NCBI RefSeq assembly: GCF_039654945.1
Contig: NW_027361804.1
Span: 6,510,001-6,574,000 of the forward strand
From: Dendrobates tinctorius
Taxonomy: Eukaryota
Length of the DNA stretch: 64,000 nucleotides
Direction: 5' to 3'
Both the position numbers and the translations under genes were made by a program. Shown piece after piece: positions 304 through 35,778 of the stretch (the stretch's first letter is position 1; every line of letters starts with the position of its first letter). The notes under the pieces were generated by a model. That model searched no databases, was not told the origin of the DNA, and saw only the letters and a list, made by a program, of their open reading frames with translations.

Positions 304-398
304 CTCCTCTGCAGCTCCTTGATCCGCACCATCATGTTCAGGTGTCCCTGGGAATACTGCTCGATCACGTCCCGGACGTCGTACGGTTTCCGAGCTTG
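304..398 (-). CDS. KCNQ1-like exon 13 (helix C); gene continues beyond the window start
   Basis: [32 protein letters not shown]; 95 nt; CAG/GTGAAA. Confidence 0.96.
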
Positions 399-510
399 CT
401 GGGAAGAAAAGGGACCAGAGAGGAAAGTGTGAAGGCTGCGGCGGGCGGTGCACGGTCAGGCGGTATATAACACTGGAGCTGCAGCACTTACACCGAGCTC
501 CGTCTCGTAC

Positions 511-586
511 CTGGAATTTCCTGCGGGCAACAAAGTACTGCATGCGGCGGGTGACCTTCACTGCCATCCGGTGCGCGTCTGTCAAT
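511..586 (-). CDS. KCNQ1-like exon 12 (helix B)
   Basis: LTDAHRMAVKVTRRMQYFVARRKFQ; 76 nt as in KCNQ1; CAG/GTACGA. Confidence 0.95.
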
Positions 587-794
587 CTGCAACACAATAA
601 CACACGCTGGAGAAATTGTAAGTATAAGTATAGTGGGGGTTGTAGTACTGGTGCCGGCTGTGGGAGTGATGGGGGTTAGTGCTAATGATGGCGGTGGTAT
701 AACCAGTGGGGGACGGGGAAGGAGCCCGAGGTCAATACTGCGGTATTACTGATATTGCAATGGAAATAACACGTGAAGATCACACACAGGCAAG

Positions 795-1040
795 TGCTGC
801 AGCACAGACACACAGCTAAGTACGGCAGCACAGCCACAGCTGTGTGTCTGTGCTGCGGTACTTAGCTGTGTATCTGTGTTGCAGTACTTAGCTGAGTATC
901 TGTGTTGCAGTGCTAAGTACCGCAGCACAGACACACAACTGAATACAGCAGCACAGACACACAACTGAATACAGCAGCACAGACACACAGCTGAGTGCCA
1001 CACCACAGTCACAAAGCTGAGTGCCGCAGCACAGACACCA
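795..1040. repeat. Short direct and inverted repeats (GCAGCACAGACACACAGCT)
   Basis: About 9 degenerate ~24-bp copies in both orientations, in KCNQ1-like intron 11. Confidence 0.7.
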
Positions 1041-2046
1041 CTAGAGAAGACTTGATTGGAAGATTGGAATCAGTAGGAATGAGCGCCCCCTTGTGTTAGG
1101 CCTGAATAGATATTAGGCCACTTTATTCAGTTCAGCAGAATAATGGGAGAGGGGAACACCAGAAGGTTGGAACAGTAAATTAAGGCCACACAGAGGCTGC
1201 ATGCACACTCGGAGCACGCTCACACTGCAAAGCACAGGAGCTCGGGTATAAAAGCGGATTCTTCATTTCTGTTTTCAAATTGTTTCCTGAATCCCTGACC
1301 TCCAGCACTTCCCAGAATAATTTGTGCTTTGTCCTCCACCATCACAGTAGCTGTCAGTAAATGAAAACCAAACAAACTAGTCCTGCTCACACAGCAGGAG
1401 CCCATGATAGAAGAGAAATGTGTCCCGGTCTGCAACTGTAACAAACCCTCAGCCGTGTGAGCAGAAGGAGGTTACGACAAGCTTTCAGCCTCTGAATGGG
1501 AAAAAAAGTCTCCTTCGCCGAGAGCTAGCGTGAAACCCAAGAAAACACGGATATGGAGTTCCACTTTTATACCTCTTCTTCCTGGGCAGACCCTCACCTG
1601 CTCATGGTGCTGCCAGGGGGGATAAAGAACAGCGATTACACGGTGCGGGCATCAGACGGAGCAGACGCATGTACTTAGGGGTCACTAAGCAGAAGGCACA
1701 GGGTGCTCAGGAACAGCGCCTCTCATGTCCTTGTGGCTGTATATGGAACAGCAGCTTAGCTGCATTTACTTCGGCTGCAGTACCTGGAGCAGCCACATGG
1801 ACGTCAGTGGCGCTGATTATGAAAAAAAAAAAGACGTTGACCCTCATTTCTAAAGCATAAATGAATCTCTTCACTCCCTCTCGCAGCAAAGAGTGAGAGC
1901 TGCTGCAGCTCCGTCCTTTTTTACAAGATGGATGTTTTTTAGCACCAGAGGTGGGAGTATAATATACCCTGTAACATGCGGCTTCTTCTTGGCGCCCCCC
2001 TTTCCGATATCGGCAGATTAACCCCTTCCCTCCCCCTGAGCCTTAC

Positions 2047-32219: not shown

Positions 32220-33890
32220 GGGAGCTCCCCCTAGAGGTGGCTGCAGGCGGAACCTTATCATGTATCTCAGTATACAGGGAGCTCCTCCCCCAGTGGTGGC
32301 TGAAGACAGGATGTTATCATGTTTCTCTGTGGGAGCGCCCCCTAGTGGTGACTGCAGACAGGATCTTATCATCTATCTCTGGATACAGGGAACGCCCCCT
32401 AGTGGTGGCTGCAGACAGGATCTTATCATGCATCTCTGTATACAGGGAGCTCCCCCTAGTGGTGGCTTCAGACAGGATCTTATCATGTATTTCTGTATAC
32501 AGGGAGCTCCCCCTTGTGGTGGCTGCAGACAGGATCTTATCATGTATCTCTGTATACAGGGAGCTCCCCCTAGTGGTGACTGCAAACAGGATCTTATCAT
32601 GTATCTCTGTATACAGGGAGCTCCCTCTAGTGGTGACTGCAGAGAGGATCTTATCATGTATCTCTGTATACAGGGAGCTCCCCCTAGTGGTGGCTGCAGA
32701 CAGGATCTTATCATGTATCTCTGTATACAGGGAGCTCCCCCTAGTGGTGACTGCAGACAGGATCTTATCATGCATCTCTGTTTACAGGGAGCTCCCCCTA
32801 GTGGTGACTGCAAACAGGATCTTATCATGTATCTCTGTATACAGGGAGCTCCCCCTAGTGGTGACTGCAGACAGGATCTTATCATGTACCTCTGTATACA
32901 GGGAGCTCCCCCTAGTGGTGACTGCAAACAGGATCTTATCATGTATCTCTGTATAAAGGGAGCTCCCCCTAGTGGTGGCTGCAGACAGGATCTGATCATG
33001 TATCTCTGTATACAGGGAGCTCCCCCTAGTAGTGGATGCAGAGAGGATCTTATCATGTATCTCTGTATACAGGGAGCTCCCTCTAGTGGTGACTGCAGAG
33101 AGGATCTTATCATGTATCTCTGTATACAGGGAGCTCCCCCTAGTGGTGACTGCAGACAGGATCTTATCATGTATCTCTGTATAAAGGGAGCTCCCCCTAG
33201 TGGTGGCTGCAGACAGGATCTGATCATGTATCTCTATATACAGGGAACTCCCCCTATTGGTGGCTGAAGACAGGATCATATCATGTATCTCTGCATACAG
33301 GGAGCTCCCCCTAGTGGTGACTGCAGACAGGATCTTATCATGTATCTCTGTATACAGGGAGCTCCCCCTAGTGGTGGCTGCAGACAGGATCTTATCATGT
33401 ATCTCTGTATACAGGGAGCTCCCCCTAGTGGTGGCTGCAGATAGAATCTTATCATGTATCTCTGTATACAGGAAGCTCCACCTATTGGTGGCTGCAGACA
33501 GGATCTTATGTATCTCTGTGTACAGGGAGCTCCCCCTAGTGGTGGCCGCAGACAGGATCTTATCATGTATCTCTGTATACAGGGAGCTCCCCCTAGTGGT
33601 GGCTGCAGACAGGATCTGATCATGTATCTCTATATACAGGGAACTCCCCCTATTGGTGGCTGAAGACAGGATCATATCATGTATCTCTGCATACAGGGAG
33701 CTCCCCCTAGTGGTGACTGCAGACAGGATCTTATCATGTATCTCTGTATACAGGGAGCTCCCCCTAGTGGTGGCTGCAGACAGGATCTTATCATGTATCT
33801 CTGGATACAGGGAGCTCCCCCTAGTGGTGGCAGCAGACAGGATCTTATCATGTATCTCTGTATACAGGTAGCTCCCCCTAGTGGTGACTA
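32220..33890 (+). repeat. 57-bp tandem array (CAGGGAGCTCCCCCTAGTGGTGGCTGCAGACAGGATCTTATCATGTATCTCTGTATA), ~29 copies
   Basis: Period 57, which explains the 19-aa repeats in the ORF track. Confidence 0.96.
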
Positions 33891-33929
33891 TCAGAACCAG
33901 TGTTTCCCAACCTCCCCTCATCATTAGTA

Positions 33930-33980
33930 AAACTACCACTCCCAGCCTCAGGCTGTCAGAGCATGCTGGGAGTTGTAGAT
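33930..33980. mobile_element. Short fold-back element (ACTACAACTCCCAG family)
   Basis: ACTACCACTCCCAGC...GCTGGGAGTTGTAG; solo arms also near 13358, 32003, 50161 and 52073. Confidence 0.55.
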
Positions 33981-35452
33981 TTGGGAAGCTGATTGAAATA
34001 CAAGCGTGGCCCCCGATGCCCTGACACTAGAGGTGGAGATCAGTGGGTGGCGCTGTGGTCAGGAGACAGATGCCATGTGGATTCCTCGCGGGAGCTGACA
34101 TTATCCTCATCCGCAGATTATCCCGGCCACTCACTGCGACATCTGCAGCGCTGAAACGGATTATCCACACACAGGGATTACCGAGCCGCTGTCCTCGAAG
34201 GAGAGGCCGATCCCAAAATTTGGCAAGAAACCGTCCCCAAATCCTGGATGGAGGGACCGGGGGGGGGGCGTCCGCTGGTGAAGCTGTGCAGGATGGGGGG
34301 CAGGGTGAGAGGCTTCCAGAAATTAAAGTGTTAACAGTTTTTATTTCATCAATCAATATAAAAATAAAATTAAAATAAATCATTAACCCTTCTAAGTCTA
34401 GAAGCTTCTTACTTTGTAGCATTTTTTTTTCCAAACCTGAAGAAAACTTTTTGCACATTAATATTATTGTAAGCACAACTATAGCAACCAGTGGGACAAC
34501 CCTCCATGCTTTATACTGCAGGCGGCATCCACTGTATATGAGCCGCAGGGTTTTTAGCTCTGTGTATGTCTATTTAAGGAGAGGACAGAGGGAATTATCA
34601 GGTATGTACACCTTTAAAAAAGTGACAAATTATTGAAATGTTATAAGTAGGGGGGGCACCATGAGATGAGACCCCCCATTATTATTAGATTAGGGGGCTG
34701 CAGATTTCCGGCGTGCCCCGTCCCCCTTCGTCCCATATCAGAACAATTATTTATATATTTTTAAGCTGAGGAGACGTCACACGATATTTGGGGTCTCGGC
34801 TCTCGGTTCCCCCATTAGTGATAAAGTCTTCTGAGCCGACTCAGATTATTTAAAGGTACGGCAGCGTCATTCTACAAACAGATAATTGGGGATTTCTTGT
34901 CATTCATCCCAACGGTCAGCGACTGTCTGTAATGGCTGATAACAGCAGACAATAGCTTTCATCCTTCAGCACAAACAAGGGAAAGGGAACTTTGGGTTTG
35001 GAATCAGTGAAATGGAGCAGAAACGTAGGAAAGTGTCTGCGAGGAGCCGCGCTGCCATCAGCATGGAGGCGGTCATGTACTGCCGTGGGTTTAGTGTCTG
35101 CCCGAGATGGGAAGGGTCCTGTGAAAGTAACCGCAACTAGATCAACTCAGCTCTGCTACATCTGACAAAATGTAGTCTTCCGGTATGTAACAAATCAACT
35201 CTGCTATTTCTGCTAAAGTCCGCTCTGTTACATGAGATAATATTAGTATTATAATGTGACAGTTTCAGCTCTGCTACATCAGATATATGGCAGACATGTG
35301 CAAACTCAGCACTGCTACATCAGATATGAGAGCTCTGCTATACGTGATAAGATCTGCCGCTGAGGAGCTCCTCTCTGCTGCACCCGCATACATAATGGAT
35401 GGGGCTCGGCGCTGGTGGGGGGCTCAGTGCTGCCTGCAGACCCCATACTCAC

Positions 35453-35778
35453 ACGCTGAAGTGGTAGATGAAGCAGCGCCATCCGCTGGGCCTCTCCAGG
35501 AAGTTGTAGATGTCGCCCTGCATGCTGGTGCGGGTCAGGTAGTGGCGGTAGAAGCACCTGGGGGAAGATTCCGCGTTGGTGTCCTTGGCGCCCCCACTCG
35601 GGCTGCTCACCTGCAGCGTGGGGTCTTGCTGCGCAGAGCAGGGGGTCCCGGAGCCATTGTTTAAGGGGGGCTCTGCGCTGAGGGCCACAGATGAGTAATG
35701 CAGGGGGTCCGGGGTCGGGGGCGCCGTGTGGCGGCTGTAGAGGGGGAGCCCCCTGCTGTCCCCCGGACCGCGCGACAT
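35453..35778 (-). CDS. KCNQ1-like (Kv7.1-type) K+ channel, coding exon 1
   Basis: ATG at 35778, with an in-frame TGA 21 nt upstream. Encodes ...[23 protein letters not shown] (KCNQ1: [23 protein letters not shown]). Donor GTGAGT; 326 nt, phase 2 as in KCNQ1. Confidence 0.9.

Follow-up and report, generated by a model that had tools for sequence, protein, structure and literature searches.

A gene beside MRPS35 in Dendrobates tinctorius assigned to KCNQ1L, the second vertebrate KCNQ1-subfamily member

Introduction

Is the KCNQ1-type gene that lies beside MRPS35 in the dendrobatid frog Dendrobates tinctorius the frog's KCNQ1 itself, or a second member of the same subfamily? We interrogated 64 kb of this genome (NCBI RefSeq assembly GCF_039654945.1, contig NW_027361804.1, positions 6,510,001 to 6,574,000 of the forward strand; hereafter the window, numbered from its first letter), in which an earlier note, made from the letters alone, had placed an apparently intact second KCNQ1 (Kv7.1) paralogue that mammals lost. 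With high confidence, we identify the gene as the frog orthologue of KCNQ1L (Kv7.1L), the second vertebrate KCNQ1-subfamily member, represented here by its first 13 coding exons and a cassette exon, and we take it to be a functional channel gene, most likely a 2R whole-genome-duplication ohnologue, that was lost in mammals.

KCNQ1L was named in zebra finch, where it is sited between MRPS35 and CDKN1B, and was found in chicken, lizard, frog and fish; in mouse and human it is missing, at an apparent chromosome 12 breakpoint (Lovell, Carleton & Mello 2013, PMC3711925). A 2025 bioRxiv preprint (10.1101/2025.09.21.677649) introduced the name Kv7.1L for the group, used cyclostome data to argue for a 2R origin and reported the channel's properties.

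Gene model

The minus strand of the window carries a series of stop-free stretches with KCNQ1 peptides, corresponding to transmembrane segments S1, S2-S3 and S4, S5 and the pore, the TIGYGD filter with S6, and helices A and B. Using flanking sequence and tblastn alignment to full-length relatives to set the exon borders, we found 13 minus-strand exons that run from an ATG at 35778 to a splice donor at 304 (Table 1). Internal acceptors are all AG and donors all GT, and the joined frame is free of stops over 561 residues, so that the 13 open, in-phase exons claimed for 304-35778 in the earlier note are borne out. The sizes it gave for exons 2-8, 12 and 13 (91, 127, 79, 97, 141, 111, 96, 76 and 95 nt) are exact, and they match the sizes of the human KCNQ1 exons.

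The window contains no runs of N, and the gene runs past its start. In Ranitomeya imitator, the orthologue has three additional coding exons (~42, 87 and 159 nt of coding sequence) within ~4.7 kb after exon 13, and the corresponding exons here (~86 residues, which would complete helix C and supply helix D and the tail) fall before window position 1. The window thus encodes 561 of ~648 channel residues, in 13 of the 16 coding exons (~87% of the protein), and the description of the paralogue as apparently intact applies to these 13, the last three lying beyond the window start. Translation of exons 5-7 gives the six-transmembrane core, a charged S4 and the T-I-G-Y-G-D filter of a Kv7 channel. 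S4, the filter and helices A and B are present, as had been claimed; helix C, which had been listed with them, is present in its first part only, up to ...IKELQRR, with its end and helix D seen in the R. imitator orthologue.

Family assignment and relatives

The pore exon (exon 6) reaches 80 bits with KCNQ1 structures, compared with 37-45 bits for structures of KCNQ2-5 (Kv7.2-7.5, the M-current channels), a different subfamily that shares with the window protein the Kv7 architecture and, as far as the window encodes it, the KCNQ_channel C-terminal domain. When single exons were compared with Pfam, clear matches were confined to exon 7 (Ion_trans_2) and exon 13 (KCNQ_channel, PF03520); the remaining exons mostly gave matches that were too weak, including weak ones to Ion_trans.

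Relatives were collected by an exhaustive search seeded with the 47 residues of exon 6, which returned KCNQ1-type proteins, and a returned lizard protein then served as the query. This yielded at least 120 relatives, most of which carry the name 'KQT member 1-like'; they come from squamates, turtles, birds, many frogs, a salamander, coelacanth, sharks and rays. The best full-length relatives of the window protein are all KCNQ1 or KCNQ1-like. When relatives were aligned to the window by tblastn, R. imitator ranked top, followed by Phyllobates and Anomaloglossus. The spliced window protein is 97.9% identical to the 'KQT member 1-like' proteins of R. imitator (NCBI models XP_069619099/XP_069619100) and R. 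variabilis, 96.4% to Phyllobates 'KCNQ1-like' and 88.4% to the L-type protein of Xenopus laevis, against 67.5-69.7% to canonical KCNQ1 of Dendrobates tinctorius, R. imitator, Xenopus, a marsupial and a shark (67.5% for the dendrobatid frogs). The guess that the gene is already annotated automatically as KCNQ1-like was right: NCBI annotates it in dozens of non-mammals, among them Ranitomeya, this frog's sister genus. The window gene belongs to the same orthogroup as the KCNQ1L already described and shares its flanking genes (MRPS35 here, MRPS35 and a CDI-domain gene in Spea). Its exon structure is identical to that of the Ranitomeya copy, and nothing of substance sets the two apart; they differ at 12 amino acids in 561 residues.

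Phylogeny

We built a maximum-likelihood tree of the KCNQ1 subfamily (IQ-TREE, LG+C20+F+G4; 50 rows, 638 columns), with three KCNQ1-subfamily proteins from invertebrates as the root. Canonical KCNQ1 sequences for the tree came from a search with shark canonical KCNQ1, and many of the species found also have an L-type entry. The gnathostome proteins fall into two sister clades, canonical (A) and L (B), each with support of 100/99. Clade A comprises chondrichthyans, salmon, amphibians, sauropsids and mammals. Clade B comprises chondrichthyans, paddlefish, gar, teleosts, coelacanth, amphibians and sauropsids, with no mammal, and mammals are likewise missing from the best 120 matches listed to an L-type query. 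The window protein lies in clade B as sister to R. imitator L (100/98). With KCNQ1 from frogs, fish, reptiles and sharks included, as the earlier note had proposed, it is excluded from clade A at 100/99, and so does not group with Xenopus or human KCNQ1, which was part of an outcome named there as refuting the claim.

R. imitator, R. variabilis, Phyllobates terribilis and Anomaloglossus have both KCNQ1 and KCNQ1L, on different chromosomes, and paired entries occur in many further non-mammals. For Dendrobates tinctorius itself, a canonical KCNQ1 is present among the database proteins. The claim of a second KCNQ1 paralogue, a duplicate lost in mammals, is thus supported by a separate mammal-free clade and by two genes in relatives, and it agrees with PMC3711925 and 10.1101/2025.09.21.677649, the two sources on which the absence of KCNQ1L from mammals rests.

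Selection and splicing

Over 1685 nt of coding sequence, the window gene and its R. imitator orthologue show 12 non-synonymous and 40 synonymous differences, which give a non-synonymous rate (dN) of 0.0095, a synonymous rate (dS) of 0.105 and a dN/dS of 0.09. At the DNA level, introns are ~88-90% identical between the two species and exons 94-100%. As judged from these substitutions, KCNQ1L is evidently under strong purifying selection.

In public runs of the same species, 39-43% of the words sampled from window 5822-6881 were found, as would be expected if the exons alone were represented. From exon 5 to exon 9, contigs of three samples (two studies of this species) and a single contig of another species lack precisely the four intervening introns, whose ends read CT..AC on the plus strand. 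One of these spliced contigs is 4105 nt long and shows no mismatch over its aligned part. Because the contigs skip introns exactly, the gene is probably transcribed.

Alternative explanations

Exon sizes and core sequence that are so strongly KCNQ1-like could also mean that the window gene is the frog's sole KCNQ1, a canonical orthologue relocated beside MRPS35. We consider this virtually impossible: identity is 67.5% to dendrobatid KCNQ1 against 97.9% to the 'KCNQ1-like' models, the tree places the protein outside the canonical clade at 100/99, and Ranitomeya, Phyllobates and Anomaloglossus hold both genes on separate chromosomes. Identity, tree and two-gene relatives together refute the canonical-orthologue reading. 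It is also very improbable that the gene is a decaying or silent copy whose frame happens to be open only within the window. Exons 14-16 do lie outside it, and the introns are packed with minisatellites and transposons, which would suit a pseudogene; a dN/dS of 0.09 over 1685 nt, perfectly matching spliced contigs (one of 4.1 kb) and a fully annotated R. imitator orthologue with the same exon structure all speak against decay.

The remaining alternative concerns age and mode of origin. KCNQ1L is an ancient KCNQ1 duplicate, most likely a 2R ohnologue, and it seems unlikely to us that a segment or a single gene was duplicated in the gnathostome stem instead. Such an event would be compatible with our tree, which has no cyclostomes and whose reach does not extend to timing relative to 1R/2R, and with PMC3711925, which speaks only of 'a duplication that likely occurred in fish'. 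Against it, the neighbour has been duplicated too, which fits a duplication of the whole block or genome: in Spea, the gene tail-to-tail with the L gene has a CDI domain, and CDKN1C takes the same place beside KCNQ1. The single KCNQ1-subfamily gene reported in lamprey and hagfish (10.1101/2025.09.21.677649) also counts against it.

Several points weigh against the assignment of the gene to a functional 2R duplicate of KCNQ1. Canonical KCNQ1 was seen in the closest relatives and not directly in the window's own genome, and the 2R dating rests on the cyclostome data of 10.1101/2025.09.21.677649. Both the 4.1-kb spliced contig and the R. imitator gene make it probable that the gene is complete in this genome. 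The runs behind the splicing evidence are not recorded as RNA, and the properties that the frog channel may have are extrapolated from a bird orthologue.

Comparison with characterised channels

The earlier note knew of no functional characterisation, a statement that is out of date. In oocytes, harpy eagle Kv7.1L produces currents that resemble those of Kv7.1 and have a tail hook; with human KCNE1 it activates more slowly, and its activation moves to hyperpolarised voltages; and Ciona voltage-sensing phosphatase (VSP) inhibits it, indicating dependence on phosphatidylinositol 4,5-bisphosphate (PIP2) (10.1101/2025.09.21.677649). Because S4, the pore and the calmodulin-binding helices are intact, and given the harpy eagle recordings, frog KCNQ1L would encode a PIP2-dependent, slowly activating voltage-gated K+ channel that is modulated by KCNE1.

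Canonical KCNQ1 belongs to the same subfamily and shares with KCNQ1L a near-identical S4, pore and S6, the calmodulin-binding helices A and B and, for the eagle channel, both KCNE1 modulation and PIP2 dependence (10.1101/2025.09.21.677649). The two differ in overall sequence (~68% identity), at the N-terminus and in the helix A-B linker, where the L gene has an exon 10 of 202 nt and the 60-nt cassette. They differ also in location, KCNQ1L lying at MRPS35/CDKN1B and canonical KCNQ1 at TRPM5/CDKN1C, in the absence of KCNQ1L from mammals, and in the hyperpolarising direction in which KCNE1 moves eagle Kv7.1L activation. Among the sampled sequences, the window-encoded part shows only three fixed differences between the clades, S194, K366 and M552 in L (window numbering) versus C, N and L in canonical KCNQ1, and these three bear no obvious functional signature. 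A literature search on zebrafish kcnq1.1/kcnq1.2 turned up nothing that bears on the paralogue question.

An optional exon in the helix A-B linker

The cassette between exons 10 and 11 is represented in the annotated X1 isoforms of Ranitomeya and Phyllobates and encodes ...GRCRSWSTLSICTSLTSSVQ... within the helix A-B linker. Segments homologous to it (...SWS(S/T)LSICTS...) are found in protein models from many frogs, from Pleurodeles and from the basking shark, but not in alternative isoforms. The cassette carries a motif of the R-x-R-x-x-S type and resembles an ancient alternative exon of Kv7.1L. Tentatively, and with the odds against it, the cassette (R-x-R-S-W-S-x-L-S-I-C-T-S) could be an ancient regulatory splice module specific to Kv7.1L, one that could carry a basophilic-kinase-type phosphosite tuning calmodulin or PIP2 control.

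Neighbouring genes

MRPS35 lies head-to-head with KCNQ1L in the window, where two translated pieces match mS35 of mitoribosome structures. On its far side, a candidate MANSC4 combines a MANEC-like exon with a large last exon. Of the MRPS35-MANSC4 neighbourhood described in the earlier note, MRPS35 is confirmed and MANSC4 is not firmly so, its MANEC match (PF07502, E value 0.008) being below the Pfam cut-off; a protein-atlas feature search with the 217-residue last exon returned generic single-pass membrane proteins only. A tandem array of 128-bp units (55959-56904, 7.4 copies) lies inside the candidate.

The flanking genes that PMC3711925 gives for KCNQ1L are MRPS35 and CDKN1B. MRPS35 is in the window and the CDKN1B side lies outside it; a CDI-domain gene is seen at that position in Spea bombifrons. 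There, a 19-kb L-type gene has an MRP-S28-family gene head-to-head upstream and a 159-residue CDI-domain (CDKN1B-type) gene tail-to-tail downstream. Spotted gar likewise has an MRP-S28-family (MRPS35) gene head-to-head with its L-type gene, and no neighbour gene was found within 10 kb of the L loci of barn owl, bamboo shark, painted turtle and R. imitator. In human 11p15.5, CDKN1C is tail-to-tail with KCNQ1. The ancestral arrangement would have been CDKN1B (tail-to-tail), KCNQ1L, MRPS35 (head-to-head), parallel to CDKN1C-KCNQ1 of the canonical locus.

KCNQ1L and MRPS35 are separated by a 13-kb spacer, the expected site of a bidirectional promoter region. Minisatellites of 29 bp and 31 bp predominate there (44638-48977 and 37395-39994), and the first of them yields a spurious open reading frame of 1346 residues.

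Introns, repeats and gene size

Long minisatellite arrays with units of 40-57 bp make up the greater part of the KCNQ1L introns. The largest, of 11.3 kb, has a counterpart in the corresponding position in R. imitator, with ~90% identity. Among the Tc1/mariner transposase remnants in the window, one lies in KCNQ1L intron 1 and the others past MANSC4.

Gene span varies widely. The Spea gene covers 19 kb and that of Ranitomeya 45 kb, as against ~283 kb for gar, ~502 kb for barn owl, ~566 kb for bamboo shark and ~727 kb for painted turtle. The compactness of the anuran genes could mean that an embedded regulatory landscape has been lost, a suggestion about as doubtful as the one made above for the cassette.

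Table 1. Coordinates of the annotated features in the window.
Feature	Coordinates	Strand	Description
KCNQ1L exon 1	35778-35453	-	326 nt coding from ATG; N-terminus to start of S1; tblastn 95% identity to R. imitator residues 1-109
KCNQ1L exon 2	13478-13388	-	91 nt; S1; AG/GT sites
KCNQ1L exon 3	9239-9113	-	127 nt; S2-S3
KCNQ1L exon 4	8706-8628	-	79 nt; S3
KCNQ1L exon 5	6881-6785	-	97 nt; S4 voltage sensor; joined to exon 6 in spliced contigs
KCNQ1L exon 6	6635-6495	-	141 nt; S5 to pore helix; match to KCNQ1 structures; in spliced contigs
KCNQ1L exon 7	6319-6209	-	111 nt; TIGYGD selectivity filter and S6; Ion_trans_2, E value 9e-10; in spliced contigs
KCNQ1L exon 8	6112-6017	-	96 nt; end of S6, start of helix A; in spliced contigs
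KCNQ1L exon 9	5950-5822	-	129 nt; helix A; in spliced contigs
KCNQ1L exon 10	2773-2572	-	202 nt; helix A-B linker
KCNQ1L optional cassette exon	2308-2249	-	60 nt, in frame; X1 isoform; good splice sites
KCNQ1L exon 11	2161-2047	-	115 nt; linker ahead of helix B
KCNQ1L exon 12	586-511	-	76 nt; helix B, calmodulin-binding
KCNQ1L exon 13	398-304	-	95 nt; start of helix C; KCNQ_channel PF03520, E value 8e-13; gene runs past window start
MRPS35 (mS35)	~49.1-52.6 kb, exons 49980..52644	+	Head-to-head with KCNQ1L; two translated pieces match mS35, E values 9e-22 and 4e-14
Candidate MANSC4	57338-55168	-	Signal peptide and MANEC-like exon, 57018-57338; large last exon with transmembrane segment, 55168-55821
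KCNQ1L intron minisatellites	16191-27498, 2806-5689, 9384-12788, 13664-15641, 29465-31355, 32219-33886		16191-27498 is the ~11-kb array of 40-bp units
Tc1/mariner transposase remnants	28008-28946, 58050-59107, ~61080-62170	+	HTH_Tnp_Tc3_2 and DDE_3 matches

Discussion

Much of what this locus holds is already known. In 2013, PMC3711925 already gave the identity of KCNQ1L, the genes on either side of it (MRPS35 and CDKN1B) and its loss from mammals; in 2025, 10.1101/2025.09.21.677649 reported it as a 2R ohnologue and recorded the currents it carries with KCNE1. On the proposed history, KCNQ1L would have been kept in sharks, ray-finned fish, coelacanth, amphibians, reptiles and birds, and lost in mammals. 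Our additions are modest: a clean exon model for one more dendrobatid, with evidence of purifying selection and of splicing; an MRPS35-KCNQ1L-CDKN1B order that is upheld in Spea and gar; and a linker cassette exon that is old.

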